A stretch of DNA of 64,000 bases from Lepidodermella squamata (Eukaryota > Animalia > Gastrotricha): NCBI GenBank assembly GCA_047495785.1, contig JBLDXI010000003.1:2356001-2420000 (forward strand), read 5' to 3'. The notes below the pieces were generated by a model that made no database searches, was not told where the DNA came from, and worked only from the letters and a program-made list of their open reading frames with translations. How positions within the stretch are numbered: position 1 is the stretch's first letter; the number at the start of each line of letters is the position of its first letter. A program made the position numbers and the translations under genes. Below, one piece after another: positions 35,341 to 64,000 of the stretch.

Positions 35341-38300
35341 TCAATCCTCAGTTGAAGATTCCAGAATTTCGACCAGAGCACGGGCATCGCCCCAACGGTG
35401 GCAATCGACCGCGATTTGCAAAGGACTCTTATATTCTTCGTCAGCTTTTTTCGCCAAACCGGGACTTTTAGAACACAAGTAATCAAGTATTGGCGTTATC
35501 TCGCCGCCGACCAACCCAAGATAATTGACAAGAACAGACCGACCGAGCTCATCAATTGATTCCGGATCAAAATCGTATTTTTCAATCAGCAATTTGATAG
35601 TATCAAGACTGCCTGCAAACGCAGCTATATGGAGAGCATTTAAACCTGAACCATCAACTGCATACACGTCGCATCCGTTTTCGATGAGAAATTCGAGCAG
35701 GTCTAATTTTCGATAATCAATCGCGGTCAGAAGAGGCGTCATTTTATGGTCTAAAGCGCGAGACTCCCTATAGTCGGGAATCAATTCGAATAATCGAGTC
35801 AAAATGAGTTTCGAAATTGAAGAATCCTTGCATTGTAAAGCGACGTGGAATAACGATTCCTTTTCATAATTGAAAAATCCCAATTCAACCTTTTGCTCGA
35901 CTAAATATTCGAAAATATCAATTTTGCCGTGTCTAACAGCCCGCATAACTGATGGCTCTCCGTTGCTGTCTGGGAAATAATAATTCAGATCGGTTTCTTC
36001 CGTCAAATATTTGAAGACAGATAAATCGCCCTGAGCAGCGTTGTTTAAAAGATCCGCGTCGTTCCGATCACGCATTTCCAACATTTCAGGATATTTTTTG
36101 ACAAAATACTTCACAACATCCAGGTGGCCATTTCTCGCGGCGAAAAAAGCCGCGTTATCTTCAAAATAGCCCGTACAAAACGGGTCCACGTTAAGGTCTT
36201 CGACGAGAAATCGGACCAGATCGAGGTTTCCAGAAGCAGCGGCGGATAAAATTGGTAATTCACCGTTGGGCAGCTTGAAATTTGCGATGAATATATCGCA
36301 ACCAGGTGGAAGTCTTGGGTCTCCGCATATCTCTTTCACAGCTTTGAAATCTCCAGTTTCCAGAGCGGCGTGGTATCGCTCAACCTCGTAAGGCAGTAAT
36401 TCAGGCTAAAATACATAATTTACATTTAAATTTTGCTGGAAATTACTGATAATTTATAGCACTTAGCATAAAGTCGTGTTTCCCATTGTGAATAACTGTA
36501 AAAGGTGGTGGAATGCCTACCAACTCACGAGGAAATTGATATCATGGCAGTGTTTCGTGAGTTATCGGTCAAACGCTAGTTCAATTTTTACATCCTATCA
36601 TCATTTTCAAGGGTAAGCGCGCCAACTCGAACCAACTACCCGGTTTCAAGGCGTATCTCAGTGATTCCGGGTATATCAAACAGGATATCGTCCTCGAGTA
36701 CCTCTTCCACTTCAACCAACATCATCTGGATAAAGACCTCGTACTACTTCTGCTCGACGGTCAATCGTCTCAGCCATCGAAGTTTGACGAATTAATGATT
36801 TAATGATTATTGTAATTTTTTGACATGCGGTTCCCGGAAGATTTACGAACAAACAATGGCAATGATGCTGGAGCAGTTTGATAACCTCATCGAAAAGCTA
36901 GTAACCGTAGTTTAAGAGACAGGAATGTCGTAACTCAGATCTTTCACATGCCTGAAATGTCAACTTTACAACGATCTGCTGATGGAAAACTCTCAGATCG
37001 AATCGAACCGGTTGACTTCAGCTTCCTCCAGCCGCCTCAATTACGACTACGTCTGGTTCCCCTGCAACTTCAGCGCCGTCCGAAGCTACTGCCGCGAGTG
37101 TCACACCTGCACTCCGCACTTTCGTAGACGTCATGGCTCTACTGCGACATGACGATAATCAATCGTCTTTCAGCCTCCACACATTATACCATGCATTACT
37201 TCAGAGGTATCCCGAACAGTTCCAGTTGGGTCGTCAAGAGGAAGCAGAACCAGAGGCCTTGGTTGCCGATCCCAGCTTGAGGCTGCCATTTGAGGGCACT
37301 ATTTGCCGTAAGGTACACTGCTTATCATGCGGTCGTCGCTATTCGCTATATACCACCTCCACGGTTAAGTCTACTGAAATCATGTGCAGGCAAAATTCGC
37401 AAGGCGACCAACCAGCCGACCAGGGTGCCGCTGGCCCGCGGTGCACGAAGCCTCTGGCGCAACGCCACAGGAGGTCGTTTTCGGCTAACCAGTCCGTACG
37501 GCCACCAAGCTTTTATCCAGCCCTGCCACCGGCGATCTCGACCATCCCAATGGTCCGCCAGCGCAACACGCTGGGTCTCTCTCGCCTCGACGCGCTCAGG
37601 CAGCGCACGTCCGCCAACCTGGATAAGACAACGGCACCTGGCGTCGTGACACGCGCCCGTTCGGCACGCGTTCGCCTCTCCCGCCACGGCGCCCACTTCC
37701 CTATTTAAGCGCAACTATCATACTTTCATTCATCAACTTCTCTACTTCGCAACTTGTTATTTTACTATGCTCTACCGGTGCCTCGTCCTAGTCCTCTCAC
37801 CCTATCATTGGCTTTTGTAACTTATCAAATTCCATATTTAATCCGAATTCCTATCGTTAATTAGAACATATTTTATCTATTTTATATCGGCGAGTTGTAT
37901 CGATCCGCTTACCTCAACCGTACCTGCCTACTGCGCGATCGGTAATTTGTTGTTTATTATCAATGTTCAAGGCTTAAACTTACCTTCATCTAACAGCTAT
38001 TCTTGCCGTCACTCTAAATATTGCTTCTCCCGGCTGACCGTTTCGCCTTAACACGAACCCGGTATGCGACCTCGCCTTATAACATTTTACCTCCTTTTCT
38101 GACACATTGTTCTGTATTCTGTATACAGGGCCTTGATTTTACCTAATAAAAAGACCGTTAGCGCCAACAACCAGTTGTGCCCTTTTCTTCGGTCACTGTT
38201 ACACACGCCAACTCGCACACGCGTCGGCGACTATATCGGTGTCGCATCGAGGATCACGAACGCAAGGGCAAGTTCGCCCCACGATGCAACAGCCCGTGTT

Positions 38301-40637
38301 CGTGGTCACCGCGGTTGACGAGGAAACAACAACTACAGGCTCTCGGCTCCTTCGGACCCGGCGAAAACTCTGCCCTTGACAAACCGGCGCAAGCTGGTCG
38401 CGTTTCTCGCCGCGGCGGTCGCAAAACCTTACCTTATCATGAAAGCGATTATTGGTCTACCACCGACTATCTTGGTTGCACAGCAGTGAAGAAAACGGTG
38501 TCACCGAATCGATACAAAACGATTTCTTAACTACTGCGATAACAGCAACTTGGCTCTCTCAGACAGATTTGCTAACTGGCACTTTTAGTAAAATTGCTGA
38601 ATGAATTTCAAGCGCGACGGTTATTTCTCGGCGATGCTCTCCATCGATGAATCCGGACAGCTACAACAGCATCACTTAAGTGCACAGTCGGATCACTTAA
38701 CCGAACACACGTCACTGAAACCTGATCCCCGTATGATTGACGCTCATCGTCCGTCGCCTCATCGGTGGTCTCAACTAAGGCTAATTCTCGGTCCCTATCG
38801 TCTCTCCAACTCAACCACTGCATCCTCCGTCTAGACCATCAGTCCCACCTTGCACACGGCTAGGTGAAATTGAGCAGCTGCTGCCTACGATCCTTGACAC
38901 GTTGAACGACACGAGGTGAGACTCGGAGCGTTTCCCTACTGATGGCCTATTGAAAGATCCGCAAATTTTCAAATCGAACGCTGATATCAGTTTTACCGTT
39001 GATTATCTAAAGCCCAAAGGTGAATACTGGTTTCCCATCTATACGAGTCCACTACACCCTGACGGAAGTGCCAAATAGACCTCGAGAAGCGTCAGGTTGG
39101 TACTATTCTACCCAATTCTGCCCTGGTACAGCTTGCGGTTTAAAAGCCGCAGACGCTTCTTCTCATCTCTCAAGCCGTCAAGGACGAGGTCTGAATATAG
39201 CGGCTAGCGGCTATAACAATTCGGATGGAAAGCTGCGATGCACATTATGCCATTAAAGTTTTCAACTACAGACCGCAGCAATTTTTCGAACTTTAAATTC
39301 GATAGGGCTCTCTGTAACGCTCTAAAATGATGTTACTAGCCATAAAAACTCCGCTAAGCAGATCGCGGATGCTTTTACAGTCCAGTTACTAAAACTGGAA
39401 ACTGGAAACTTTTACTCCAGTTGCTAAAAAGCGAGATATATTACTCACCACTTGCTCATTTTTTGAAGATTTCTTCTCGGACGGCGCACCAATGAAAAAG
39501 ATTTTATCGATCAATGTCGAAATGTGGTTCGCCAGCGTCTCATCCACATCAAATAATACATCAAGAAGTCCGAATTCAGGATTTTCCATCAGCCTCAACT
39601 TTAAAACCACAAACAGTTACGGATTCATGATTATAATTGCTATTTGCAAACCTTTTGATCGACCATTCGAGTTGTTTTATGAAACGTTTTGGCTAAATCC
39701 AATGTTCCGCAGTGACCAGGCGTTAAGTTGCTGTAGTTGTTTTGACGAAAAATTTTCCTCAAAGATGGCCAGAGATCAACAGAAAGCCGGTTTTGAACGA
39801 AATTCTTCCTCGCAACTAATCGACTTTCCAAATTTTTGAGCATTACACAGCGATTCTTCTCAATGGCCAATCGAAATTTTTCAATCTGAGCATCGCATTG
39901 AGAATTGATTTCAGCCGTCAATTCATTTCTTAATTTCTCGTTATTTTCATCGTGATCCTTAACTTTCCTTTCGCGGCTGGAAATTGCGGCTTGATATCTG
40001 CTAACAAACTGGACAAATATGCGATAGAATTTTCCAAAAATTTGAAGATGAAAACTGACATTAAGAGATATCCAGTTCATTTCAAGCCGTAAACGCTCGC
40101 AATGGGCTAAAGAGCAAGATTCGCAGAACAGCTGTTCACAATGAGGACATTCCCAAGATTCGTCCGCGAAAAGATCGCTATGATGGCAACGCTCGCCGAC
40201 AACGAAGCACTGTTTCGCAGGATTCGAGCGTCTATTCAGCTCGTTTAAAATCTTATCCAACGAATGATTCCTGTGGAAACCTGGCTCATCTAGGAGAAAA
40301 TACTTAATAGGTAACAATGTATGTCTTTTTCATTGAACCAAACCATTTTCGTCGTCAAACTCCAATTTTTGATTCAGTTTTCGACAAATGGGACATTTAA
40401 CTATGTGATAATCGGGGTGAGATTGGTAGCAATTAAAACAGATCGTATGACCGCATTCTTGCAACAAAACTGATCGGATAATATTCTCATTGCAAACGCA
40501 GCAATTCAAAATCTGGAAAATGCATGATTTATTTCATGTTTTTTTCGAGCAGAAATGAAGCTTACTTCAGTGAAACAACTGTTAATAGGTTGAATTTCTT
40601 CGATTCGAGGTCTCTTTTTTCGAATTTCAGACGCCAT
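35341..40637 (-). CDS. RBCC-ANK gene T1: NLS, RING, B-box-like, coiled coil, linker, about 10 ankyrin repeats
   Basis: Exon 40637-40566 gives MASEIRKKRPRIE. The RING exon from 40512 gives CCVC..CGHTICFNC..CPIC, followed by B-box-like CHH..CPHCEQLFCESCSLAH and a coiled-coil exon. The linker exon ends in a phase-0 donor at 39449, and the ankyrin exon 36405-35341 opens with a phase-0 acceptor and has no start codon of its own. Confidence 0.85.
36575..36775 (+). mobile_element. pogo/Tigger-like DDE transposase fragment in T1 intron
   Basis: Translates to LHPIIIFKGKR...SDSGYIKQDIVLEYLFHFNQH...LVLLLLDGQSS, the DDE_1 pattern (P..IFKG, SGW, LLLLDGHSSH). Confidence 0.7.
36990..38190 (+). mobile_element. 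Decayed LTR-retrotransposon-like remnant (integrase-like pieces plus LTR-like tail)
   Basis: YVWFP..AVRSYCRECHTC resembles the integrase zinc-finger region. An AT-rich tail with AATAAA (38146) follows and shares sequence (gaacccggtatgc, tacagggcctt) with about 53240-53335. Confidence 0.45.
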
Positions 40638-40984: not shown

Positions 40985-43900
40985 TCACCAAAAAAAGGGT
41001 TCACAGGGTTCCAGTTTCTGATGAGTTTCCAATAAAATGCGAGCCACATTCCAGTGGCGCTTATCAACGGCCTCTTGAAGCGTACTTCGGCCGGAATCTT
41101 TATAGTAGATCATTCTCACAAGAGATGGGTCTAATTGACACCAGTATTCAACCAATTCTGGGTTGTCGTTTGAAACAGCTTCACGGAAAGCTGCCATTTC
41201 ACTTTTCCACCGAAGACTTTGATCCAAGCCAGATTTTTTGAGCCATTTTCTCATAATTTCGATCAATCGAGGAGCTTCTTTCGATTTAAAGCTACAAGCC
41301 GCTAATTGCAATGCACCTAACCCACAGGTAGTAGCAGCCTTTAGGTCACATCCTTCATCAACGAATTTGTTGAGTAGTTCAAACCTCCTGGATTTAATAG
41401 CGTACAACAGCGGGGTGAAACCGATGTTTTCCGCTTTCTCCTTCAAATCCGGGATCACGACGAGCAAGCGATCTAAAATTGCTTTTGAAGTTTCGACACA
41501 ACCGTCAAAATCGGAAAGGCGATGAAACAATGTCATTCCCCGGCTATCGACCACTCCACAATCAGCTCCTTTTTCGATTAGGAATTCGAAAATGTCCAGT
41601 TTTCCGAGTTTCACCGCCTGAATGATCGGCGTCTCTCCATCATGATCTTTCCGATTAATGTCAATATCTAAATTTTCGAGCAGGTACTTGACCACAGTTA
41701 ATGATCCGTAACACGCGTAGCTTATCAGGCAACGATTTTTCCGCGACGTTGCTGTTAGACATTCAGGAAATTTTGACACAAAATATTTAACAGCTTCAAG
41801 TTGCCCATGTTTTGCAGCAGTTAAAACTGCGTGCTTACGCTCTCCACGGCTCGAGTGTCTTCCGCAATTAGATGGGTCCACGCCAAATTTTTCGACAAGG
41901 TAACGGATCAATTCGAGGTTCCCAGATTTAGTAGCGTAGGAAATAGAAGGAGATGCCCTATAGCTCTGCCCCATGAAGTCCGCGATGTAGAGATTACAAA
42001 AAAGAGGGAGTCGGTTGTCTAATAAAGTCAGCTTCACCGTCTCAATGTCGCCTTTGTTTAGTGCGGCTTGGAAGTGCTTTTGCTCAGAACTTAAACTCTT
42101 ACTGAACTGAAAAAACGAATAAAAATAAGAATTTTATTCGAAATCGATAAGATACCAAGTCAGTTTCTCCGGTTGTTCTGCTATAGCTCAAACATTTTGC
42201 CGTTTTGTTGATCAACTTTAGAATATGTTTTTCAAGTTGCGCTTCAAAGTCAAGCTCGAATTTCCACAAACGTTTACAAGGTCGCTCCATTACTTGCAGC
42301 TGTATTTCAAGCAAAAATAGGGTGATTACTTTTCAAACCTTCTGATGAGTCATCGAGGTACTCAACAAAACTGTTGACCCCCGTTTTTTCGACGGAATCT
42401 TATTTCGAACCTTCAAAAACCCTAGAAGTCGATCTAATACAATTTCTAACCCTCGGTCATCGGTCAAAGTCGGTGTGGCGGTGACACCTTTAATAAATAG
42501 CACGTGTCACGCCACGAATTGTTATTTCTATCTGGCGCGTGCCAGCAATAGCCGCGCCAGAAGCCTGATGCCATTCCGCCTATAAAAAGGCCCAATTTGA
42601 TACTTTTAAATCATCTACCGTTTCGGAGATCATAAAATAGTTTAAGCCTTAGCCTTAATAAAATACCCTAGTTTCGTATACGTCGAACGTGTTTTTGCTA
42701 CAACTTTACCTAACAACAAACAAGTCGGGTCGTCGGTCATGATCCCGTGATCGCGAGAACCCGTCACCATTACAGTCGGTTTGTCCGAAACGAGGTCAAT
42801 CGATTTACCTGGTCAACAGGTGTGATGGGACGGCGAGATCAAACTGCTCCTAGGACTGGCGCGCATCATAAATCATAAATTTTTTGAGAAATCGGGGAAA
42901 ACTTGTATGTCCGAGGAAGGGATATTTTTTAATAGATTTCTGTCAAAATTTAGCCAACAGGTAAATTAGTGAGCACCTCGATTACTCATCAGACGGTTTG
43001 AAAAATAATGACCCACTAGATTTCGAACAAGCTCACTTTGCAATCAATTTCCATAGCTTGTTTGTAATGATCGAGCTCGAAACCATCGGTTATGTGCTGT
43101 GTCGCGGTGATGGAGGCTTCGGTTTCAGCATACAATTCACGAGACATATGCTCATGAATCCACGCCCTGTTTTCTTCGAACGGTTTGTCCAACTCATTTA
43201 GAAGCTCCTCTCGCGCTTCTTCAACAGCCAGCTGCAGTTTCTGGTTCAATCGATCGTAATAGGAATTTATCTCATTTATCAGCTCAATTCTTTTCGCCTT
43301 CATTTCCATCTCGGCGGCAAATTTAGTCTTTTCTCGGTTGAGGACAGCTGATCTCAAGCGACCGGCGAACTATAAAACGGCACATGCTCACGGTCAGTTT
43401 AAAAAAGCAATGCTCACGTTGACAGAAATCCAAGCCGTTTCTAGTTTAACTTGTTCCAGGTGGGCTTTGTTGCAAATTTCGCAAAACAATTTATGACAAT
43501 GAGGACACTGCAGCCATTTTTTCGAGTCCAAGTGGGGACATCTTTCGCCAACAAAGAAATGTTTGTAGACTGGATCTAAAGCTCGTGAGTATACCCGGTT
43601 GATCTTTCTCATGGCTTCATCATACAAATAATCTAAATTGAAAAAATTGCATTGTTTCTATGTATTTAGAGTAAAAGAATGATCCACCTACATCTCTTAT
43701 TAGAGTCACATTCCAGTCCTGGACTCACTGCTTTGCAAACAGGGCACAGTATGAAATCATTTTCATCGCTCGTACGAGAAGGGAAACAGCCCTCGCAAAT
43801 AGAATGGCCGCAGGCATCCATCAAAACTACGTCTTCCTTCACTTTGTGACAAACAGGGCAGCTCAATGCCTGCAATACGCAGAATTATTCAAAGGCTATG

Positions 43901-43993
43901 CATATTACGGTAACTTGCCTCCGCGATAGATGAATCGACAGGTGTCAACGATTCGATTCTCGGCCGCTTGAAACAACGACCAGTATTAGACAT
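40985..43993 (-). CDS. RBCC-ANK gene T2 (best-supported model)
   Basis: Exon 43993-43919 is followed by a 49-nt GC-AG intron, RING CPVC..CGHSICEGC..CPVC, a B-box-like exon and a coiled-coil exon ending at 43037. The linker exon 42299-42156 joins the ankyrin exon 42106-40985 in frame across a 49-nt GT-AG intron. Confidence 0.9.
42320..43014. mobile_element. MITE in the T2 coiled-coil/linker intron
   Basis: Imperfect TIRs of about 45 bp: GGGTGATTACTTTTCAAACCTTCTGATGAGTCATCGAGGTACTCA vs the reverse complement at 42970-43014. Confidence 0.8.
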
Positions 43994-44149
43994 ATCGCGC
44001 GAATAAGAATTTCTAAAGATGTCATGACAAATAAATGATAAATTGGTGACGATCAATACTTTTTCTCGTATTCTCCATTAAACCTGAAAAATCCAAAATT
44101 CAATATTTGAATGAATATCTACGTATCATGTGTAAAAAGGTCAGTATTT

Positions 44150-47100
44150 TCAACAGTATCCAAACAAAACAGGCGCCGAAGATTCGAGGCTTTCCAGTAA
44201 AACACGAGCAGCTTTCCATCGCCGATTTTGAATCGCTTCGATGATAGGAAGCTGATAATTGCTGTCCATCTCGCTAATCAACTCCGGTGCCTTTTCACAC
44301 AAATACTTCGCTGCTTCAAATTCATGAGGATTCGTAGCACAATGCAGAGCAGTTCTGCCGTATTCATTCTTAACACTAGGATCAAAACCATGAGTTTCAA
44401 CCAATTTTCTGACCAGCGGCAGCAATCCTTCTGACGCAGCTATATGCAACGCATTGTTGCCTCCTCCATCAACCGCTCGAATATTGCATCCATTTTCAAT
44501 GCAAATATCGACAAGATCGAGATTTTCCGAAATAATGGCATTGAGAAAGGGGGTGTGTTCACTGCTGTTTGTATTCTCTTTGAAATTTGGAATCAATTGA
44601 AATAGTCTCTTCATGATAACATTCGCGCCGTCTTCTTCCACCACATCAGAAACAGTGTGGAGTAAAGTTTCGCCGTAAATATTTTTGACCTTTAGAGTCG
44701 CCCCTTTCTCGACCAGGTATCCAAAAATTTCGGATTTCCCTTTTTTCAACGCTTGCATTATCGGCGTTTCGCGATCCCTATCCCTTCGATTCATGTCGAA
44801 ATTTCGCACTTCGACTAGATATTTCACCACTTCCAAATTTCCTTGGCAAGCATAACTTAATAGGCATCGATCTTCTTCGCCAGTGGCTTTCAATGACTCA
44901 GGGTATTTTTCGATCAGATATTTCAAAACTTCGAGATGTCCATGTTTAGCCGCAAATAAAACAACAGGATACAGTTGCTTTTTGTAACAATTTGTTCGAC
45001 CCTTGAAAAGCGGGTCAACGCCAAGATTTTCGATTAAAAAGCGGACGAGATCGAGGTTACCGGATTTAACAGCTTTGCGAAGAGCAGGCTCGGTGCCACA
45101 TGGTGACATGTAATTCGCGATGTAGATGTTGCAATCAGGCGGCAGTTCGGGATTGGAGCAAATTTCGACAACCGTCTTCAAGTCGCCTTCCTTAAGAGCC
45201 GTTTCAAATCTCGCGATCTCGTAGACGGGCACATGGGGCTAAGGAAAATAGGTAAACAAAATATTACAGAAAATTCGAATAAAGGGAATATTAATGAACA
45301 TTTTGATGAGAAAAGCAATGTTTCAGTCGTCCCTACATGACATGGCAACACTTAATGCCCGGCTAGATAATACAGAATCGGAAAGTCGCAGGCAATTTAA
45401 GGACCTCAACAAATCGGTTGACAAATTCATAGGCGTGGTGGAAGACATCAAAACAAAAATGTCAGCCGTTACCATATGCCTCAAACTGCTGTTATAGAAA
45501 AACCTTTCCGTGTGGCTCCGTGCTATTTCGTCATTCATTACTTTCTTATCGGCACCGACCAGGGAGTCATTACGGCGCAGTATAAATATACGACTGACTA
45601 TCAAATTACACACCACCCGGGTTGCATCTGAAGTACCCATACCGGCCGAAATGTCGTTGATAACTGCGCTTTAGTGATCTATTCCCTACGGTCTCAAAAC
45701 AGCTGTAACTATCTCAAGTGCAAGTGTTTGAAGGGCTGCAATTCGTCAGTGGTTACTGATGAATACATCGATATCATGGCGGGACTTCGCAAAGTCATCG
45801 GCAGCTGCCTTGACAAAAAGCCCAGCCTGGGCATACGTCGTAGCGCAATCTGGGATCTGGTAAATAATGCAGCATGTTTTTCATGGATCAATTCGTTGTT
45901 AAAAATTTTGTTCTCGAGTATAATTGGAGTTTGTGGAGTGTAATTTTTTGGGCTGAAGACCGTTTTTCATGCGATTTCGGCCAGAGCTTGCTCTTTTTGG
46001 TGTTTAAAATATTCCCGTTTGGTGCTTAAAATGCTTCAAAAGCATGATGGGACCTAATGGGCTCGGTTAGATCGCGCATTTTCCCGACAACGAATGATTC
46101 TGCCAACAGTGCCATTGTTCCTACCAAGAAGCGCAACATCACAAAGCGTCACAAAAGAGTACTTATGTCCGCAGTGCAACGCTATATGGAGCAAGAGCAA
46201 GAAAAGCGAAGGAAAATTGGGCAAATGTCCGGAGTACCGCGGAGTACGGCGCAGTACCGCGCTGTAATTATAGTTTTATAATTAACTGTTTCGATCAACT
46301 CTATTATAACGTCTCTATCTACAATGAAGGATTGTAATTTGTTCTACGTTTTTTTCGTTCATGATGAGTTCGTTCAGGTAGAGCATGCTGTCACTGGATG
46401 CAATCTCTGCGTCATTTACAAAACCGATGACTTTTTCTCGGTTGGCAAGAAATTCTATCATGTCAAATTTGCAGTGCCTAACTCCTTCAAACGGCCGTTT
46501 TCCGGCGAGTAACAGAGCTATCTGTCAAGAAATAACGCGGTTCGGTTATGCAGGTTGCGAGACCTCGCAACACAACATTTTTCAATATGTTTGATCCAGG
46601 TTGCTGACCTGAGTCGCCAAATGCAAACTGGCTTTGAGGTCATCAACAATCGCATCGACGCGACGGAAACACGTCTGAATGCCCGCCTCGACACTTTAGA
46701 ACGTCGTCTCAATGGGATTCAATGGGCAACAGTAAATCAACACCGGCTAACAGCTTCGCCTTATAAAGAACCCGGTACGCGTCTCCGCCTTCTCTACTCA
46801 CTTTTTGTATACTTATGAGTTGTATCTTTTACATTCCGGGACTTCCGTTTGAGAAATAAATCAAGAGACCGTTGAACAGCTTGCCCTTTGCTTACAAGTA
46901 TCGGTCTCCGCCCCATTCGCAAGTTCGAAAAAGTTTAATACCTCCATTTTGTTCCGGTGACTCGTATGTGCAACAACACTTCTGCATTATAACACGAACG
47001 ACTTCCAGTCTTAAGTCTGCTATGGTAGCATTATATCGAAAGGCGACATCGAAGCCAGCCCTTGAAAATGTGTTGCGCGATACAAAGGAGGCGAAGGGAA

Positions 47101-48996
47101 TCCACAACATGCACGCAATCTGAGTTGTTTCACTGTTAGTTGTCCGCGCTGCTACTATTTCTGGCGAATAGAACAAATTACGATATTCGAACGCTTAACT
47201 GACTAAAACGGCTTCTACTTGAAACTCGATCCGGTAAAGCTGCATTTGACGTTGGCGTCATCGACTCGGAGGGTGTTAATCATATACAGTACTATCTTCA
47301 AGAGCCAAGAAAGCGTTTTTCGTAAGGTACACCATGTAACGCCCGTTTAGTACCCAGCCGAATTTTGCATCCACAGAACCACTATATCCTTCGACAGTGG
47401 TAACGAATATCTTTGTGGAAGAAGGCGAACTGCACTCCCTGAAAGCAGTAGACGAAAACGGCAAGCTGCTTCCAAATTCTCGAATTTTTCTAAGGTGGCA
47501 CCTTGATGACCTCTTCAAAAGCTCCCATGAAGACAAAGGCCACCCCGAACTACCCCAAAGCTAATCGCTTGTATTAATCGCTTCTTTGACTGTTCATTGA
47601 CACTGTTTCAAAAGTTTCCAGTTTTCGATTCACCATGCTGTAATTGATAGGTGTACTAATAAATAATGTTAAATGTTGCGTGTACATCTAGCGGAAAGTC
47701 ATTCAATATTTCGATAGTATTTGAATAGGCAGCGGAATGCGCGCTATTTGCAATATATTCAATATTTAGCGGAACGCGCTTTCCGCTAAAACGCGTGTTG
47801 CGCTACGACAAATATAAATTAATGGGTATCGGGTGGCCTATTCTGATGCTGGCTCATTAAGAGCACGCCGATGTTACAGTATTTTCTCCGTCCATCACGG
47901 ATTCCCCCAGAACTATAAATAGCCACTACAATAAATAAATTAGAACGTGTAGCAAGCCTTGGTATCCTAGCTCTATCGTAGGTCCAGAAAATCGACAAGA
48001 TACAATCATAGCCTAGGCCCTAGGCTTAGAAATTAGGAGCCTAGGAGTCCATGTGTAATGTAGGCCAACAGGGTTCGTTGCCAGAATTAATGTTTTTGTC
48101 ATTTTTTGGTTATTATCATTTTTTATTGCAAATTTCAAACTACCTCAAAGACTTCTTTAGTGGAATACTCGCCGATTCTCCATCCAACGCCAGCAGCCTT
48201 ATCGATTAGCCCAATAATGTGATCGATAACCGGTTGATCAGAAACAAATTGCAGTTCAGGCAGGTATCCCCCAGGCTCTTCGATTTTCTGCAACTAACAA
48301 TCAAGAAGGTTAAACATGGGAAATAAAATTAATCAATTGAACCTTTTTATCAATATCATTGACTTCGCGGAGAAGTTCGGCCGCGTCGGTCATAGAACAA
48401 TATTCGAGACCGTCGCAAACTTGTTTGCTAACGATAAATTTGTCGATTAATTCAAAATTTTCTGAAGAAAGCGAATCGATTGAGAATCTTCGACGGGTTT
48501 GAACTCGACTTTCGAGCTTTTCAAGCATTTTTCGACGGCTTGCCTCCACAGCTGATTTCAGCTTTTCGATCAAAGAATCGCAATGAGAATTTATTTCATC
48601 CGTCAAAGCCTTCTTATTCTCTTCAATTTTCGAGTCAGAAATCGCCATTTTTTCTTCGATTTTCCACCCTGCTGATTTAAATCGCTTTGCGAACTGAAAT
48701 TCAGATCAAAATGTTAAATTTTAAAATTCTGGAAAATCAAAACGAACGTTTACAGAAATCCAGCTTGATTCAAATTTGAGAAGTTCCGAATGACATTTCG
48801 CGCAAGGTTCGCAAAATTTTCGCTGACAATGCGAACATTCGACAGTTTCTACATTAGGCAAAACTGATCCATGAGGACATTTTTCTCCGACAATAAAATT
48901 CACCAGTCCATTTTTAGAAGAATAAAACGAGTCAAACTTGGGTCTCTTAATATTGGCAGATTCAGAAGACACCATTGTTTTTATTAAATTAACCAT
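44150..48996 (-). CDS. Gene T3: RING-less B-box, coiled coil, ankyrin paralog
   Basis: The N-terminus (..IKRPKFDS..) runs directly into FIVGEKCPH..CSHCQRKFCEPCAKCH. A coiled-coil exon and linker exon 48293-48144 follow, then ankyrin exon 45238-44150 in phase 0. No RING-coding sequence lies in 49000-49400. Confidence 0.82.
45294..47565 (+). pseudogene. Antisense, fragmented coding-like insert inside the T3 intron
   Basis: Two related coiled-coil pieces (TLNARLDNTE at about 45350; RLNARLDTLE at about 46675), each follow a splice acceptor. The frames contain many stops and AATAAA occurs at about 47659. Family not recognised. Confidence 0.35.
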
Positions 48997-52300: not shown

Positions 52301-55029
52301 AGGATGCCTCTCTCCAACAACCTCTCCCACATCCCACACCATCAATTGTTGCCGTCTCAGGAGCCAATGCCTCCGCTAGCGTTGCAAACGCCAACTGTCA
52401 GAGTTAGTTTGGAGTCATCGCCCCTGTCATCGATCCCGAAGACCCCACCATCGGCAAGCTTTTCGGACAAACGCTCCCTGAAACAATTGATATCCGAGTT
52501 TGATAAGGATTATTTGAGGAAGTTGGGCGCGTCGGTGAATCCTTGAAGATTCGCGATGAATCATTGGTTGATGTTTTGCCGCAGCCTCACGAAACCTACG
52601 AATATCTAATTCTGAACAATGTCAAGTGAGCATTTCAACGACTCGACTCGACTGCGAGGCCTTCGTGCTGATTATATTGAACATGGCTGAATCAGAATGT
52701 CATTCAACGAACACTGACTTTCTTACTCTTTTTCACTTCTTCATAATACATTAGATGTGATCAGTACCTGAAGCATTGATTTATCCGGTTAGTCCGGCGA
52801 CGAACCAAATCCCGTTTTAATGAAGCATATGAGCCTGAGAATCTTTTCAACTGGCTTCTTCGTAAAATGATAGCGTAGAAAAACTTATTGTGGCGGTGAC
52901 AGGTTGTAGTCCCGCCACGCTTCATTGAACACGCGATTCGCGGTCGCGTGCGCTGCCCCTCTCTTATCATTTTGTTTCAACTTCTCTCATTTTTTATAAT
53001 AATTCCACGAATCTCTACTTACCTACGTTGCCGGCAGATCGCCGTTAAAACACCTTATTTGAATCCTACCTTTCGTTATTAGAACATTTATATATAATAC
53101 TTGTCGGTTATTCCTCGCGTCGGTCCGCGCCCTCACACAAGCCTCCTTCTCGGGCATACAATATGTTTTATTATTAGGACGCGCTTATATTTCGCTAACC
53201 GCCTGTCTTGCCTCTGCCCATTTTACTGCCCTGTCCTTGTTTGAACCCGGTATGCCGATCCTCTTGCTTCTTTCGACTGTCATTTGAACCTTTAAATTGT
53301 ACAGGGCCTTACCTTTGAGAATAAAAGGACGTAACGCGACTCGAGCTTCTTCGGTGTCTATAAAAGTCGTCCCCGTTACACTTATTTTCGCCGAAAGCCG
53401 TGAAAAGATTGGAACGGTCACTGATGACACGTTACTGATTGAAAAAAGGCATTTCTACAAGTCGAATACTTGATAATGAAAAAAATCAGCAATTTCGAAT
53501 TTGAAAAATTGGAACAATGACGCCCCAGCTTGTGATTTTAATGTACATAGCAATTTTCGCATATGCCAACTGATAAATTGCAGACACCGAAAAATTAAAA
53601 TTAAAACAGGCCCTTTCTTCATAATCATCTGAAAATTAGCTCAACGTAATAAAAGTCTCCACTACCTTAGTCCTTAGTTAACATTATAGTAAATAAATTA
53701 TGATTAGGACAACATGCGTTATAGTAATGAACGTACGATCAATTGCCCCAATATAAAAAATATCATCAAACTATAAAAAAATGTTGCTAGATTGAATTTT
53801 TGAATTTTGAGATCATTTAAAACCGAAAACTCACTGGTTGATATGACGAGGAGGCTAGCTCAGACGGCAAACCAACGAACAGAACTTTGTCAATCAACTT
53901 AGAAATGTGATTGACCAGCGAATCATCCAGGTTAACAACGATTTCCTGAAAGCCGATTTCGGGATTTTCCATCATCCTCAACTTCGATGAGATATTGAAA
54001 TTAAAATAATGGCAGTTCTCAACGGGTACACTCTTACCCTTTTGTCGAATTTTCGGACCAATTCATTGAAATTTCCGGCCTTGACAAAGGATGAGCAGTA
54101 CGTTGGAGATTGATCGTAATACTCATTTTGAAGAGCAACTTTTTCACAGACTTTCTGACAGTTGAAATCAACATTGAGTCTGTTAGTCACCATTTTCTTC
54201 CTTTCATTAAATCTACGGTCTAGCTTCTTGCTCAGTTTTTGGCGATTCTTCTCCACGGCCAGTCGAAAATTTTTAATTAGACCATCGCACTGAGCATTTA
54301 TTTCATTCGTTAATTCCCTTCTCAATTCTTCAGCCTTCTCGTCGTAATCTGAGATTTTCTTATCGCGGCTAGAAACAGCGGCCGAATATCTGTCATAAAA
54401 CTAAAAAAATTGCTCTAATTTTTGTGGAATTTCAAAATTCAGAAACTTACATTTACAGATATCCAATTCGTTTCGAGTCGCAAACTTTCGCGATGAGCTA
54501 GGGAACACGGCTCGCAGAATAACTGATCACAGTGGGGACATTTCGCAGTTTTATCCATGAATAGCTCGCCATGTGGGCAGCTTTCACCGACAACGAAGCT
54601 CTGTTTCGAAGGTTTCGATCGGTCTTCAATTCCCTTCAAAATTTTAACCAGCGTGTAATTTTTATTGAATCCTATTATTTAAATCGAGGATTTGAAAAAT
54701 ATCGGTTTTTTAGCAAAGAACATACCATTTTCATCGGTGGACTCTAGCTCAGATTCGCGATTTGTCTTGTGGCAAATTGGACATTTCACTTCTCCATACA
54801 AAAGCCGAGATTGAAAGCAATCCGAACAAATCGTGTGGCCGCAGTCGTGCAACAAAATTGGTCGGTACATAATATTGCGACATGCATCACATTTCGAAAT
54901 CTGGAGTAAATTAATGAATTAGATTTTTAAACCAATGATAGCAAAGACAAATCATACCTTCTTCAAAGATTCATCCATAGGTTGAATGGTTTCGATTCTT
55001 GGTCGCTTTAATCGTGTTTCTGAGGCCAT
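49400..55029 (-). CDS. RBCC-ANK gene T4 (closest to T1)
   Basis: MASETRLKRPRIE, RING CDAC..CGHTICSDC..CPIC, B-box-like CPH..CPHCDQLFCEPCSLAH and a coiled coil. The linker exon ends at 53835 and the ankyrin exon 50470-49400 is in phase 0. Confidence 0.85.
52860..53400 (+). mobile_element. LTR-like remnant in T4 intron, related to 37640-38190
   Basis: Shared motifs gaacccggtatgc and tacagggcctt followed by aataaaa. Confidence 0.4.
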
Positions 55030-55258: not shown

Positions 55259-58200
55259 TCACTGCATGAAATCATTGGGCCTCAGAGATTGATGAGCCTC
55301 CACAAGAATGCGAGCCATGTTCCAGCTACATTTCATAACAGCATCCTCCAAAACAGTTCGGCCGTTTACTTCACGTTCTTTGATGATATTCGGAAATTTT
55401 TCGCACAAATACTCCATGAGTTTAGAATTTCGACTTTCAACAGCTCGGTGTAAAATTGTGTTTCCGGACTCGTCGAAAAGCCCTGGATCCAAGTTGTGAT
55501 TTTCGATCAAATTTCGCACAGCTTCAAGCGACTGAGGAACATTGCGGGATTTCGGGTAACTTGCAGCTAAATGCAAAGCACTCTGGTCATGATAACAATC
55601 AATAGCCTTTGGATCACATCCGTTTTCGATGAAAAAATCAATCAGATCGAATTGCCGCGACTCAACAGATTGAAGTAAGGGAGTAAATGGGCAGCGATCG
55701 CCGGATTTTTCCTTCAAATCTGGGATCAAATGGAACAAGCGCTTCAGAATTGCCTTCGAAATTTCAACGCTACCCTTGAAATCAGACGCGAAATGTAGTA
55801 GTGTTTTGCCATCATCACTCATCACACGCAAATCGGCTCCTTTTTCGATTAAAAATTCGAAAATTTCAATTTTTCCAGATTTCACAGCAAAAACAATAGG
55901 AGTCTCTCCGTCGCGATTTTTTCGATTGATATCCACTTGAAAATTTTCGATCAGGTACTTGACCACCTCCAAATTTCCGCAACACGCATGACTGAGTAAA
56001 CAGCGATCTTTGCGACAGGTCGCGGTTAGAGAGTCCGGAAATTTTGCCAGCAAATAAGCAACAACTTCGAGATGGCCAAGTTTGGCCGCGATTAAAGCGG
56101 CGTGTTTAATTTTACGCATGCAAAAACTCGTTAATCTTCCGTTGTTTGAAGGGTCAACGCCGCATTTTTCGACGAGGTAACGAATCAGCTGGACATTGCC
56201 AGATTTGGCAGCGTAGCAAATCTGAGGAAATTGCATATCGTAGTCTTTGAAGTTGGCGATGTAGATGCTACCACCGAGCGGTAGCCTGCCATCGGATAAA
56301 ATATGCTGCACCAAGTCGATATCACCTTTGATCAGGGCAGTCTCCAATCGCTCCTTCTCATAGTTCGGTATTTTAAGCTAGAGGAACAACAAATGATAAG
56401 GAGTAATGCATCCTTTCGAGACACAAAAATGCGGTGCTCTATCTCATAGCCAGAAAAAATTGTAAACCCAAGAAAAAGAAATTAAATGTGAAAATGATTG
56501 CAAAATACCAGGTAAAATGGATGATATTACCGATTTTTCCAAGGTAAAATTCCAAAAATTACCAAAAGGTACTTCCGCGATTTCCTCAATAAATTTCGAA
56601 ATTTTTCGAGAAACTAGAAAATTAACCCTCCAGCGCCCACGACGTGTATACACGCGTTTTTCACTTTTAATACCCGACAAATTCAGATTTTCCTTTTCTT
56701 TTCACCTGATAATTTATTTCACTACGATTGCGATAAAAATATCAACCTCGAACATTTTTTTCTGAAACACCTGTGCCCTCTGTCGCAGTGTAGGAAGTTG
56801 GCATAGTTGGCAAGTGCCTAAACGCTTGTTTACACGCTTGTGGTGCGCTCATGCGTGGCGTCGATATGGCCGATCGCCTTCGTACGACATACAGCATCTG
56901 TACGACATACAGTGTTTTACTGGGGACTCGAAATTGCTCTGAACAACGCCTTCATTGTAAGGCGGCAGGTGAGCGAGGACGCTGACTCCACGGCACTCGA
57001 TTTTCGGCGCGAACTCGCTGAGCTGCTTGCTGCCGCGCAATTGGCGCAGCCAACGGCTCCAAACACGGCCAAAGGGAAACGCCGCAAGTGCGATGTCAAT
57101 GTCGCGTTGACGCCTACGGCGGCTTGGCGAGCTGGTGGCCACTACCTGGAACACAACGGCTACCTGCCCGGAAGCACGACCTCGGTAATGCGCCGTTGCC
57201 GACTCTGCCACGCCCAAGGCAATCGCAAGGAAACGTTTATTCACTGTGCAAAGTGCCCTTTGCGTTGTACCTTGCTTCGGGCAGTATGGACCTCACCGTG
57301 GCCAAGCTTGAAATCGAAATAAGAACTTCCAATGATTTTTTCCATGATCTTTATCCATATTTTCTGACATTTTCTACTAATAAATTGATGAATAAAACTC
57401 TACAATTAGCATATGCGCGTGTTTAGACGCCTCATTATCGTGTCGAGACGTCTTAGTATTTTTTCGCAACTTGCGGGCATAGACGTCGAGTTTCTGGAAA
57501 AGCGGGTTTTCGCGTAAACCCGCCAAATCACCGAAAAACGCCTTTGCGTGTTTACGCGCACATCGACACGCGCACATCGACACGCGCATCCGTGGGCGAT
57601 GGAGGGTTAATGAGAGATATTCGATGTTTCCGGTAAGTAAATTTGAATAAGTTGAAGTTATTGCTAAAAGATAGTAATTTCTGGATTTATATGATTGATT
57701 TTTGGATTTGGAAAATTCGATAATGGCTGGAGACACTATGAAGTTTCCCCGAATTTTTAAGATTAAATAAAAATATCATTTTTACCTCATAGTCTCTGCC
57801 TTCCTCAAACCACTTAACAGAGGCTGTTTTCCCCAACAGCTTGACAATATGGTCTTCGAGTGACCCGTCGCGCTTAAAAACGATATCACGCAGGTAACTG
57901 CTAGGCTCTTCCATACAGCGTAGCTATCAAAGAAAATTATGAGAATTTGATAATTTATCGACATCGGTTCAGAAAAACCTTGTTATCGATTTCCACAGCA
58001 CGTTTAAAATCATCCAAAGTCAAGTCACCAAAATTCGGCTGAGCGGCGATCAATGCCTTGATTTCATCAGATCGTTGCTTTGATAAACGTTCATGAACCA
58101 ATTTTCTGTGTTCCTCAGCTCGAATTTCTAGATCATTCAGCAGTTTTTCGCGATTTTTCTCAACAGCAACGCGGAGATTTTCGATCAATAAATCGCAACT

Positions 58201-58958
58201 TTGGTTTATTTCACTCATTATTTCACACTTTTCCGCATTGATTTCGCCTTCAGCAGCAACCAGAAGATCTTCCCGATTAGAGACGGCCGATTTGAAACGA
58301 TCAGTAAACTAAAAGAATATTCGATCAAGTGTTGAATTTCCAATTATTATTGAAGAATACGAACATTGAGGGAGATCCAAGCAGTTTCGAGCTTAACGCA
58401 TTCAACGTGGGCTTTGAAGCAAACTTCGCAGAAATAATGCGTACAGTGAGAACACTGCGAGCGCGAGGGCTGCGAATCAGCAGTATGAGGGCATCTCTCG
58501 CCAACAACAAAATTCTGATTGAACGATTCCAGGGCACGTGAATAAAGAATAAACTCGGTTGATTTTGCTCAGCGAATGATCATGAATATAAACTAGAAAA
58601 TTGAGAAAAATTTACACTAAATTGCTTAAATTTTAAAATTATCCACCATCAACTGACCTTTTCCTGAAGAACCACGGTCGACACCCGGATTTACGGCATT
58701 ACAAACCGGGCACCGCCTCGAATAAAATTGATCAATCGGGTGAGCTGAGAAGCAATCTTTGCAGATGGAATGACCGCAAGCATCCATTAATATCACATCT
58801 TTGGTCACCTTGTGGCAAACGGGGCAGCCCAATGCCTGAAATGGTAATTGAAAATGAAATAAAAGTCTTTAAAATGGCGTAACTTGCATCGACGAGAGAG
58901 GTATCGCCAGCGATTCGATCCTTTGCCGCTTTATATTGATTTGACTCGAATGGTCCAT
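55259..58958 (-). CDS. RBCC-ANK gene T5 (closest to T2)
   Basis: MDHSSQINIKRQRIE, RING CPVC..CGHSICKDC..CPVC, a B-box-like exon and a coiled-coil exon. The linker exon ends at 57786 and the ankyrin exon is 56377-55259. The exon-1 donor choice is uncertain because of a 7-nt deletion relative to T2. Confidence 0.82.
56626..57606 (+). mobile_element. piggyBac deletion derivative retaining the transposase C-terminus
   Basis: TTAA TSD (56622-56625, 57607-57610) and 16-bp TIRs CCCTCCA(G/T)CGCCCACG. The internal ORF has VFYWGLEIALNNAFIV...LDFRRELAE and the cysteine-rich RRCRLC..RKET..HCAKC. Confidence 0.93.
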
Positions 58959-59190: not shown

Positions 59191-59286
59191 CTGTTTTGCC
59201 GCAGAAGCTCATCACTCGCAAATCGGCTCCTGCTTCGATTAAATCGATTTTCGATTGATATCCACTTGGAAAATTTCTATCAAGTA
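59191..59286 (-). repeat. Short internally deleted copy of T5-like ankyrin exon sequence
   Basis: Matches about 55801-55860 joined to about 55915-55958, and is flanked by repeated ACAGGCATAGCAT and ATCCAAAATAAA. Confidence 0.65.
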
Positions 59287-59414
59287 TTAACAGGCATAGC
59301 ATTCGATAACATTTTCAAATATCCAAAATAAAACGAAACTAATAATTGAAGAGAAACATTTTAAGTTTGCAAATAATATGATGGAAAGCTCAACAACTGA
59401 AAAAATCGAAAAAG

Positions 59415-62400
59415 TCATTCGTGTAAGAATTGAGAGGATTTCAAGTAGCTTTTCCAGGTGTGATGAAACAAAATTGGAACATCGCAATAATGATGATAAC
59501 GTAACGCCCGCATTAACGGAGTATCGCCATTCACATCATCCGCCTGATCGAGCGATTCTGGGTACTTCACGCAAAAATAGTTGGTCATTTCCAAATTTTT
59601 TTCAGCAAATGATAAAGCCGAATGAAGCTCGTCATTCAAATCAAGCCCAGAGAAGCCGCATTCTTTTATTAGAAATTTGACCGTGTCGAAATTTCCTGAT
59701 TCCGCCGCGTAATGCAGAGCGTTCGAACCTCGAGCATCTTTGGCAACCATGTCACAATTTTCGCGGATAAATTTCTCTGCAAGATTTCTCCGTCCTTTTT
59801 TACAGGCAGTTAAATATGGAGTTTCGCCCGATTTATCGATTTTTTCATCAATAATGTGATGAACTTTTGTCTTCAAAATATCAAGGATTTCAAAGGCTCT
59901 GTCATTTTCACATTCTGATAGCAGATGAAACAGGTTGTAGCCGTATTGGGTCTTTACTTCACAATTCGCTCCATTTTCGATGAGATAATTGACAAAATCA
60001 GGTTTCCCGAGCCGAACGGCCGTCATGATAGCGGTTTCTTTCTGGTTGTCCAATGTATTCACGTCGATTTTCGAATTCTCAACCAAAAACTTGACGAGTT
60101 CCAGTTTCCCTTTGCAAGCCAAATGCAGCAGATTTTTCTCGATTTCGAAAGTTTCACCAACAATTCCAGGGAATTTTTGCAACAAATAATGAAAAATTTC
60201 CGAATTTCCGAACCTGAGCGCATTCAGCAACGGGTTGTCATTAATATTACCGAGTAAATAGACGCGACGTTTGAAACATGGGCCATACACTCCAATTTCT
60301 TCAATCAAAAATTTCAAGATTCCCAACTGATTGCATCGAGCAGCTACTGAAAGGGCGGTTTCGATTTTTTTGGATAAAAAATTGTTGGCGATGAAAAATC
60401 CGCATCCTTGAGGCAATCTTTCGTCGTAAATAATCGCCCTTAATTTTTCGACATCGCCTTCTTCTATGGCTGTTTGAAATCGAGAGAGTTCATGTGGCCA
60501 AATGGGATTATCCGTTGGAAAATAACGACTTAGAGCCTGAATATGAAAAATCGATACGGCGTTTCTAATTTCGACGCTATCAACTCACAAGATCTGTGCC
60601 GATAACACGACGCTGGGTCCCATCTTCTTCACGATCGCGTTCACGAGAGTAGACCGTTGCAGTTCGTTCTACGTCGTGTAATAAGAATTCGAAGGTATAC
60701 GGATCCACCTTAAGCTCGATCTTCGGCTCCAAAGCAATTGAATCCAAATTGGCTAGTCTTTCAAGCTAGAAAAGGGTTAATAATGCACAAATTAAACCGA
60801 GTATGAGATTTTCCGAATTTAGTGGGATGGGCTGATTTTGAAAAAGATTTTTTTCAAAACTCAAAATCTCAAAATGTACTGTTACGAGATAGTAGATATC
60901 AGATTTGAAAAGCAGAGCATTGCAAATTTGTACAACTAATCCGAATCTAAGAAAAAATTAAAAAATTTAGCATTGAAAGGCCGCGGGTCATACGAATTTT
61001 TCCCGCCTTCTGACTATGTAACATCACCGGCTCTTGAAGAAGTTTTCTTAAAGATTGATCGTGTTATTATTCGATATTGTTACTTTATATAATTAGAATC
61101 CAACAACTACATTCACGTCTCGAAAACCGAAGTTACCAACAAAATTAACAACCTGACCAAAGCGTATTAACAAGAGTGCGCTCGGCTCTTGGAGACGGAC
61201 GAGCAGGCATCCTCGATCGCTTATTACGACCTTGACGAATTCATGGCGGAAAAATCCGGTTCGAAACCGCTTAGTGATGCAATAGATTCAGGCCAGCAAT
61301 TATCTGTTCATCTCTTGGCTTCTGGGGTCGACAATCACTGGCGCGTCATCGTCGTCAAGGTCGAGCCTTCTGTGCCACACAACGCATAAAGCTCTTGATG
61401 CGTCGAAAACGAACTTCTTTCTGATCTTGCGCATGCAAGACACCGCTCACCACTCTTTAATCAACAATAGCATATATTTCACGCTTCCTACTACTGCTTT
61501 ATCTAAAAGTGTAGGGAAGACAACTAAATCTACGCTGGACACCATATCGACAATATCGATCAGCTCAAACTACAGGTAGGTAGGTAGGAGCCGTAGACAA
61601 ACGCGTGACGAATGTTGAGCAACTTGCAGAAAAACGATGGAAGTATATATATATAAAGATGATGTTAATATATCTCGAACAAAATCGAGAAATTCCTTGA
61701 AACGACATTGAAACCCATCTCGATCAAACATCGGCTAAAATTCAATTCGCCAGAAGTTCAATTAGTCTAATTACCACTGAATCAGTCGCCGCTCACGCCG
61801 GCCCTTTAGCAGCCGCCGCTAGCTCATCGTTTATACGCTCAACTTATTTTATTCGCATATCTTTTAGAGATAGGGGCTCACTTTCAGTTGATAATATACG
61901 CGCATCCATTTGTTGCGCGTAAAATCATCGGTAAAACACGCATATCTTCAGCGTGCGCGATATGCGAATCATGGCAAAGAAGACATGTGCATCTCGAAGA
62001 TGCGCGTAAAATGCGCCTCAGTGATGTAGGAAATTTAATACCCATGCAGTAAATTATTGAAGTAAAACATTCTAGTCTCTAGTTTTTCTTTTTTGTATCT
62101 TTTTTGAGAGCGATTTCTTCGAACGAAAAACGAATTGCAGCGGCTGGAATCGAACCCACGTTTTTCACATGACAGCAGATAATTGATACGAATGCACCAG
62201 TTAGCCAACTCGAAATTTTGATTAAAAACGGACTCGCCAACACAACAATTACAAACCAGGTATACGTTGAAGCCAATAATGTCTGTTACGTTGCCGGATT
62301 CTGCCTATCACGTCTATCAAAGAAGCTCATCTGCAAGCTATGCATTAAATCACCTATCGGCTCGGAACAATGTTTTTTCTGTTCATTACATTGAGAAAAT

Positions 62401-64000
62401 ATAATGACGATTGGCGTATCTACTGTTCTGGCGTCTGGCTTGTTTCGGGCTGTCAAATTTGTGGTCAAAACTCAAAAATCTGCAATTGCCAAATGCTTCT
62501 GTCCTGCGCTGGGGGTTTCTATTATGGCTTTCCGTTAAATCGGCGAGGAAAATTCAAAGATTCTGGACTTAAAATGGGCGCGCGAAGTGTGCACTACGAT
62601 TCCTGTTGTCTACAGTTTGTTGAAGCGAAAATCGAAAGACGTTTACTGTCGGCTATTCAACAAGCTTCGATCAGTTTGTCTAACGTTGTCTTCTATCACC
62701 TGGATGGTCGATTTCAAGAAGGCCGTCATCGAGGCTATCATCATCGTCTTCCCCAACTGCCTCTTATCGGGTTGTGTCTTTCACCTTGCGCAATGTGTTT
62801 GAATTGAAACTAGTTTACTCGGACGATGAAGAGGCGCGAGTTCGCATCAAACGTCTAGTCGCGCTGGCATTGCGAGGTGCCTCGCGTTTTCGCCCTTCTC
62901 GATGCCGATCTTGCGCCTGTCTCGGCAAAATATCCGAAAATGGCAGAGCTCTACCAATACTTCGAGAAGAATTGGGTCAACGTGTGACGACATGGCCAGC
63001 AAAGTGTCCGTCCAGAATTCGACTTCGAGCTCTGGAACATGGTGAAGCGCGTTGAAAATTCGCTACCTCGCCCCGACAACTATCACGAGGCTTGGCATCA
63101 GCAATTCACGGCCAGCAATGTCAGGAACCACCCGCATCTGTGGCGCCTCATCATGGGTCTTAAAAAAGGGCAGAACCTGATGTAGGAGAGGGTAGCCGAC
63201 TTTCGCCTCTGCCTTTGCCGCGAAAGAGGCTCTGATGAAACTTACCCCTACTTATTCTATTCGCTACTTATTACCATTGTGGATTAGCTATTGTGTCGGC
63301 CGGTCAATATTTGGACCCATTGAAAATTGAAAAAATAAAAACAAAATACCTTAATGTCCGAGTCCCAAACTTGTTGATAAACTTCGCAGATTTGAGTTAA
63401 ATCTAGCAATTGATCTCCCTCATTCATTTCTTTCACCGCCTGCACTGCAGCCATAATTTGACCAGGTTTCATCGCTTGGCAGGTTGTCGCGACCAAATTT
63501 CGCCGGTCTTCAACAGCTTTTTCCGCATCAGTGATGAGTTCTTTACGAAAACTTTCAATTTTAAGGCGCAATTTTTCAAGCAATACGTCGCAATGGTAAT
63601 TGATTTGGCGGGTAAGCTGATTTTCGTGCTCAGCAAGCTTCGAATTGACTGCCTCGGTCTGCTCATTAGATGACTTCATCCATGATTCCAAACGCTCCGA
63701 AAACTGTAAAAATTAAATATTGAAACATTTCAAAAATAAACAAAAAATGAAAAACTTACATTTACTGAAACCCAGCTGCATTCGAGTCGAAGGCGTTCAG
63801 CGTGAACAATGGAACAAGGCTCGCAGAATCTTTCATCACAATGAGGGCACTTTAACGCGTTCTCATTATCGAATTCGCAATGAGGACAAGTTTCACCGAC
63901 GTGCATGAATTCTTTGTAGCTGGACGAAAGCAACCCTCGAGAAGCCTCAAATATTTTTTGCATTCCAACATTGACAGGTAACTCTAAACAAATGAAAGGA
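59415..64000 (-). CDS. RBCC-ANK gene T6 (5' end, presumably with the RING, lies beyond the window)
   Basis: B-box-like exon (LPVNVGMQKIF..CPH..CPHCDERFCEPCSIVH), coiled-coil exon ending at 63350, linker exon 60765-60589, a 52-nt intron, then ankyrin exon 60536-59415 in frame. Confidence 0.85.
62136..62212 (-). pseudogene. tRNA-derived pseudogene or SINE head (Asp-like GTC)
   Basis: A-box TGGCTAACTGG, B-box GGTTCGATTCC and a CTGTCAT anticodon-like loop. The stems are poorly paired, so it is not called a functional tRNA. Confidence 0.5.
62570..63180 (+). mobile_element. Degenerate MULE-type transposase fragment in T6 intron
   Basis: IPVVYSLLKRKSKDVY..LF, MVDFKKAVIEAI..FP..GCVFHLAQ, YFEKNWV and WNM..RPDNYHEAWH, interrupted by stops and frameshifts. 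Confidence 0.85.

Follow-up and report, generated by a model that had tools for sequence, protein, structure and literature searches.

We analyzed a 64,000-nucleotide stretch of the genome of the gastrotrich Lepidodermella squamata (GCA_047495785.1, contig JBLDXI010000003.1, positions 2,356,001 to 2,420,000, forward strand), referred to here as the window, in which six genes resembling TRIM ubiquitin ligases and ending in ankyrin repeats occupy positions 35341-64000. Gene models were built manually from the window sequence by reading open reading frames (ORFs) across candidate splice sites. The six same-strand TRIM-like units that an earlier reading of the DNA (the sequence-only reading) had proposed were recovered in these models as T1-T6 (collectively the T-family), all on the minus strand. 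T1, T2 and T4 have six exons each, encoding in turn a short N-terminus, a RING finger, a B-box-like finger, a coiled coil, a linker and an ankyrin arm. Their frames are completely open (680, 688 and 682 amino acids, respectively), and the ankyrin arm is encoded by a single intronless exon of 1.07-1.12 kb. T3 has an intact frame of 605 amino acids in which the N-terminus runs directly into the B-box-like exon, without a RING; a tblastn search over the T3 front-half region likewise detected no RING. A 7-nt tandem duplication at 58553-58540 shifts the frame of the T5 B-box exon, so that T5 is broken as assembled. In T6, the B-box-like, coiled-coil, linker and ankyrin exons lie inside the window and the 5' part lies beyond its edge. 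Accordingly, the proposal that each gene encodes (RING)-B-box-coiled coil-linker plus ankyrin repeats holds for T1, T2, T4 and the RING-less T3, and falls short for the frameshifted T5 and the truncated view of T6. All introns except T2 intron 1, whose donor is GC, are GT..AG. Each gene contains one long intron, always flanking the linker exon, and most of the others are 48-65 nt long. The long intron precedes the linker in T2 and T6 and follows it in T1, T3, T4 and T5.

Two public sequencing runs were compared over 36340-42330: one from 2015 that is probably RNA (X1), and one from 2024 that is DNA-like (X2). An X1 contig with a depth of 14.6 joins 39449 to 36405 across 3,043 nt of T1, with GT..AG borders on the minus strand, and the T1 introns of 51 nt and 53 nt at the B-box/coil and coil/linker joints, respectively, are likewise skipped in X1. 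No spliced T1 joint was found in X2. Together, the two runs indicate that the coil, linker and ankyrin arm of T1 are carried on one spliced message, as had been predicted for the 39449>36405 junction. The T2 junction had no X1 coverage, so for T2, as for T3-T6, the joint is supported by frame, splice signals and homology. As noted in the sequence-only reading, every linker donor and every ankyrin acceptor is in phase 0. The linker-ankyrin junctions of T2-T6 are probably cis-spliced as in T1.

Alternatively, each ankyrin ORF could be a gene of its own within an operon, with a spliced leader added at the phase-0 acceptor, in which case the RBCC (RING-B-box-coiled coil) and ankyrin proteins would be made apart. 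Junction introns of 1.4-3.4 kb in four of the six genes would suit such an arrangement. However, the direct cis joint refutes it for T1, and for the whole family it is highly improbable: the ankyrin exons lack a conserved start codon (their first Met falls at residue 44-171), the linker exons close with a donor instead of a stop, and the junction introns of T2 and T6 are 49 and 52 nt long.

The RING is of the C3HC4 type; none of its eight ligands varies among T1, T2, T4 and T5, and it matched Pfam zf-C3HC4 above cut-off. Its closest counterparts in the PDB are the RINGs of BRE1 and TRIM32; as these two score about equally, descent from Thin/TRIM32 is a lead only. The second finger follows the consensus C-x-H-x(9-12)-C-x-H-C-x3-F-C-E-x-C-x3-H-x-E in all five aligned copies, with the spacing of a B-box type 2 and seven of the eight ligands in place. 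An additional invariant His and Glu could substitute for the missing ligand. ESM-Atlas features of the B-box plus coil pointed to zf-B_box/TRIM clusters at 0.90-0.91, and all ten best families agreed. Directly after the B-box-like exon, the coil exon encodes 110-121 amino acids that are charged and nearly Pro-free, and a hydrophobic period of 3.65-3.7 was detected in four of the six coils (T3-T6, p 0.0015-0.04). The linker exon gave no match in the ESM Atlas. A KR-x-[RK] motif is present in all five visible N-termini; it is consistent with a classical nuclear localization signal and suggests nuclear import and nuclear targets. The open frames, together with the T1 joints in RNA contigs, place the RING, the B-box-like finger, the coil and the C-terminal module in this order on one polypeptide.

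Several observations weigh against reading these genes as spliced TRIM-like ligases. The final His of the second finger is replaced, no zf-B_box match was obtained for the finger in Pfam (ANCHR-like_BBOX, E=0.0018, stayed under cut-off), and PDB sequence and fold searches returned no B-box, the finger model being shallow and of low confidence (predicted local distance difference test (pLDDT) 67). The heptad signal is non-significant in the T1 coil (p=0.49) and weak in the T2 coil (p=0.08). Furthermore, an RNA joint was obtained for one of the six linker-ankyrin junctions, that of T1, in a single contig, and the run that supplied it is only presumed to be RNA. The likeness claimed for the second finger thus stands in its spacing, seven ligands and Atlas features, and fails at the last ligand and at the Pfam B-box cut-offs.

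In the terminal exon, Pfam matches were to ankyrin families only, and the protein ends after repeat 10. The predicted structure of this arm (pLDDT 87) contains ten helix pairs, in agreement with the about 10 repeats counted originally. Its closest fold is the N-terminal ankyrin domain of espin, which also has 10 repeats (Z 30.4, root-mean-square deviation 2.3 over 327 residues, TM-score 0.80). Espin is an actin bundler without a RING and is 20% identical to the arm; the likeness likely reflects a common repeat number and curvature rather than any established kinship. The best contiguous in-register sequence match, to repeats 2-4, was to FEM1B/FEM1C, substrate receptors of cullin-RING ligase 2 (CRL2). 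Residues 47-145 of the arm profile align to FEM1C 42-141, and the loop between repeats 2 and 3 has 63 versus 65 residues. FEM1 has TPR and a VHL-box and works through cullin, whereas both parts are absent from the T-family protein, and the second half of the arm gave no FEM1-type match. A FEM1-like origin of the arm is a possible lead. A bacterial donor of the intronless exon found no support, the best matches being at most 35% identical and from scattered taxa.

Ankyrin repeats form the target-binding arm of ligases in BARD1, MIB1, plant XB3/XBAT, ASB (ankyrin-SOCS box) and F-box-ankyrin adaptors; to our knowledge, none of these carries a RING-B-box-coiled coil before its ankyrins. With TRIM/RBCC ligases the T-family shares the order RING, B-box-like finger, coiled coil, C-terminal recognition module, and RING-less members comparable to T3 also occur among TRIM-like proteins. 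It differs from them in its ten C-terminal ankyrin repeats, in having seven of the eight B-box ligands, and in an RBCC spread over four exons. According to TRIM surveys, only a few C-terminal modules have ever been joined to the tripartite motif, whose defining domain is the B-box, of type 2 where only one is present and with eight zinc ligands (PMC2533329). The C-terminal modules of the described classes are SPRY, NHL, filamin, PHD-bromo, COS/FN3, MATH, ARF and TM (transmembrane); because the terminal exon matches ankyrin families only, the T-family falls into none of them. The word ankyrin is absent from two TRIM surveys, Sardiello 2008 (PMC2533329) and Marin 2012 (PMC3503706), which upholds the statement that ankyrin arrays lie outside the standard classes. 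Literature searches yielded no description of an RBCC-ankyrin class, and ankyrins are unmentioned in the L. squamata genome paper (PMC11660948).

Homologue searches with the B-box exon and with the coil alignment were blank, and the ankyrin exon retrieved generic ankyrins only (about 22-40% identity, without RING or B-box Pfam matches); since the queries were exon-wise and full-length 680-aa kin were beyond search reach, these blanks are weak. No T-family kin were found in the viral contigs searched. The single metagenome match of the scan, L001, was rejected as an unrelated chance match (GC 65%). To this limited degree the suggested lineage specificity was borne out, no other organism with the architecture having appeared in the exon-wise searches.

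The block T5-T4 repeats as T2-T1 at about 14.1-14.9 kb, suggesting that the array grew partly by block duplication. This duplication, the loss of the RING in T3 and the recent breakage of T5 point to birth-and-death turnover. Mobile DNA is found in the introns: at 42320-43014, an element whose 45-nt terminal inverted repeats are 89% alike fills T2 intron 4, and in the piggyBac-like insertion of T5 (Table 1) an ORF at 56840-57322 (+) has a Cys-rich end resembling a transposase tail and gave no Pfam match. A decayed ankyrin fragment, 85-90% identical to the T5 ankyrin exon, lies between T6 and T5 at 59192-59286 (-). The gaps from each stop to the next ATG measure 156-456 nt (40638-40984, 43994-44149, 48976-49399, 55030-55258 and 58959-59414). 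Shortly 5' of each ATG following these gaps there is an acceptor-like AG; no leader was seen. The genes may form an operon whose transcript is split up by trans-splicing.

Pairwise identity is 29-58% between ankyrin exons and 19-45% between coils. The paralogs T1-T6 are old, with synonymous divergence (dS) of at least 1.2, often saturated, and dN/dS of 0.19-0.40. Coiled-coil and ankyrin trees agree in grouping (T1,T4) and (T2,T5), with support of 91-100, which speaks indirectly for joined genes in T2-T6 as well. With groove positions defined as 33, 2, 3, 5, 13 and 14 in DARPin numbering, identity between copies is 0.18 in the concave groove and 0.45 on the convex outer face (permutation p<5e-5). 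The earlier description of a conserved framework with residues diverging between copies was therefore correct. The contrast between groove and outer face is two-fold in generic ankyrin repeats as well (0.09 versus 0.19).

Codon models were run on these six old paralogs, for which near-saturated dS gives low power. Overall omega in M0 was 0.22, that is, the genes evolve under purifying selection. Site models detected no positive selection among the six paralogs at this low power (M1a versus M2a, p=1; M7 versus M8, p=0.26). A fixed-site model gave omega values of 0.47 for the groove, 0.14 for the outer face and 0.21 for the rest (p=8e-19 against one omega), and the groove value falls significantly short of 1 (p=6e-8). 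Constraint is stronger on the ankyrin exon than on coil plus linker (omega 0.20 versus 0.26, p=4e-6). An excess of amino-acid change on the binding face was thus found in the sense that the groove exceeds the remaining sites, and not in the sense of a class with omega>1. Given the saturated dS and limited power, selection may have acted episodically.

These results bear on the idea that T1-T6 act inside the cell as immune or anti-transposon sensors engaged in an arms race, as TRIM5 and the finTRIMs do, with the groove as a variable antigen-binding face. The groove is the most variable class in the fixed-site model, and birth-and-death turnover would also fit. In addition, X2 contains two contigs of equal depth over 40035-40435 (T1 RING/B-box), one identical and the other carrying 43 differences over 401 nt; two more of equal depth cover 40787-41292 (T2 ankyrin end), the second about 10% divergent. 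Part of these second-copy variants is present in X1, and four amino-acid changes result from ten listed coding variants; the second copies are either alleles that have diverged or a young, unplaced paralog. finTRIMs and TRIM5/TRIMCyp likewise form tandem lineage-specific clusters in which exon shuffling or capture supplied the C-terminal module (PMC2657112; PMC2533329). However, finTRIMs have RING/B-box regions that are almost identical and a positively selected B30.2 (PMC2657112), whereas the front halves of the T-family are as divergent as the ankyrin arms, positive selection was undetected, and the pattern of constraint is reversed. Moreover, groove variability is a generic ankyrin property. 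We consider immune or anti-transposon sensing possible, though on the unlikely side. With negative site tests, near-saturated dS and a constrained ankyrin exon, the phrase "rapidly diversifying", by which the sequence-only reading had characterized these receptors, is unsupported.

Another explanation is that most copies are redundant or decoys drifting in a duplication-prone region, many of them inactive as ligases. The frameshift in T5, the RING-less T3, the decayed ankyrin fragment, the transposon-filled introns and the variant B-box would all be expected from drift. By contrast, omega lies near 0.2 across a tree that spans more than 10 substitutions per codon, the RING ligands are invariant, T1 is expressed and spliced, and relaxed selection on T5 or T3 was rejected (branch omega 0.19 and 0.11, respectively). 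Drift is accordingly an improbable account of the array.

Taken together, RBCC-ankyrin is an undescribed variant of the TRIM design that is real, spliced and selected. We favor, with good confidence, a family of old, tandemly expanded dimeric TRIM-like E3 ligases in which the groove selects the substrate and the specificity of each paralog was fixed long ago, possibly acting in the nucleus, with T3 as an adaptor or decoy. Dimerization, ligase activity, localization and targets are what we infer by analogy. One intronless ankyrin exon would have been added, in phase 0, to the end of an RBCC front half, followed by tandem expansion. From general knowledge of TRIM biology, the coiled coil would form an antiparallel dimer, and both ankyrin arms of the dimer would hold a protein target in the concave groove. 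Target binding would then cluster dimers through B-box-like contacts and pair their RINGs, which would transfer ubiquitin from an E2 to that target. The RING-less T3 could act as an adaptor or decoy within heterodimers. Because the grooves differ between paralogs yet are constrained, each copy probably gained its own substrate set long ago. A bolder proposal, which we hold to be rather doubtful, is a large lineage-restricted TRIM-ankyrin repertoire (a natural 'DARPin-on-a-TRIM', with a FEM1-like degron reader as its possible source) that keeps watch on nuclear proteins of viral or transposon origin and is kept diverse between haplotypes.

Table 1. Coordinates of the T1-T6 exons, selected introns and the piggyBac-like insertion within the window
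Feature	Position	Strand	Basis or remark
T1 ankyrin exon (terminal)	35341..36405	-	Phase-0 acceptor, stop at 35341; joined to 39449 in RNA contig
T1 linker-ankyrin intron, 3,043 nt, GT..AG	36406..39448	-	Skipped in X1 contig; contains repeated DNA, where X2 depth reaches about 400
T1 linker exon, phase 0/0	39449..39598	-	Gene model and RNA contig
T1 coiled-coil exon	39652..40008	-	Gene model; introns on both sides spliced in X1
T1 B-box-like exon	40060..40289	-	Gene model, alignment, Atlas features
T1 RING (C3HC4) exon	40344..40512	-	Pfam zf-C3HC4_3, E=7.7e-8
T1 first coding exon, basic KRPR motif	40566..40637	-	Gene model
T2 ankyrin exon	40985..42106	-	Pfam ankyrin and gene model
T2 linker-ankyrin intron, 49 nt, GT..AG	42107..42155	-	Gene model; outside RNA contig coverage
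T2 linker exon	42156..42299	-	Gene model
T2 exons 1-4	43037..43993	-	N-terminus (GC donor), RING 43869-43692, B-box-like 43632-43418, coiled coil 43369-43037
T3 ankyrin exon	44150..45238	-	10 helix pairs in model
T3 RING-less front	48144..48975	-	N-terminus and B-box-like 48975-48748, coiled coil 48693-48343, linker 48293-48144; followed by a 2,905-nt intron
T4 ankyrin exon	49400..50470	-	Pfam ankyrin and gene model
T4 exons 1-5	53835..55029	-	N-terminus, RING 54900-54726, B-box-like 54671-54451, coiled coil 54400-54038, linker 53981-53835; followed by a 3,364-nt intron
T5 ankyrin exon, open frame	55259..56377	-	Pfam ankyrin and gene model
piggyBac-like insertion (TTAA, CCCT..AGGG ends), non-autonomous	56621..57611		In last intron of T5
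T5 exons 1-5, frameshift in B-box exon	57786..58958	-	7-nt tandem duplication 58553-58540
T6 ankyrin exon	59415..60536	-	Pfam ankyrin and gene model
T6 linker-ankyrin intron, 52 nt, GT..AG	60537..60588	-	Gene model
T6 linker exon	60589..60765	-	Gene model
T6 coiled-coil and B-box-like exons	63350..63983	-	Coiled coil 63703-63350, B-box-like 63983-63760; gene model, alignment

Elsewhere in the window, 2210-25528 (-) contains tandem divergent homeodomain-like genes of two or three alternating types, with Pfam Homeodomain matches in ORFs 2213-2773 and 13299-13994. An intronless 409-aa ORF at 4079-5308 (-) has a C-terminal SOCS box just below cut-off (E=9e-5) and is a candidate for another ubiquitin-ligase receptor near the array. 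Long ORFs are present at 6512-9536 (+) and 25812-26972 (-), two of which were scanned and had no Pfam match. The 6512-9536 (+) group is transposase-like in appearance, with a SWIM-like Cys/His motif near 8600. Immediately left of the array, paralogous hydrophobic ORFs lie at 30043-30426 and 34026-34415 (+); the one scanned had no Pfam match.

If immune sensing did prove to be their role, these genes would offer a first view of intracellular immunity in a scarcely studied phylum. As a spliced and selected RBCC-ankyrin family, they add a new C-terminal module to the TRIM repertoire, one expanded by a whole animal lineage. Ankyrin grooves are programmable binders, and the T-family would thus represent natural counterparts of engineered binder-RING degraders.

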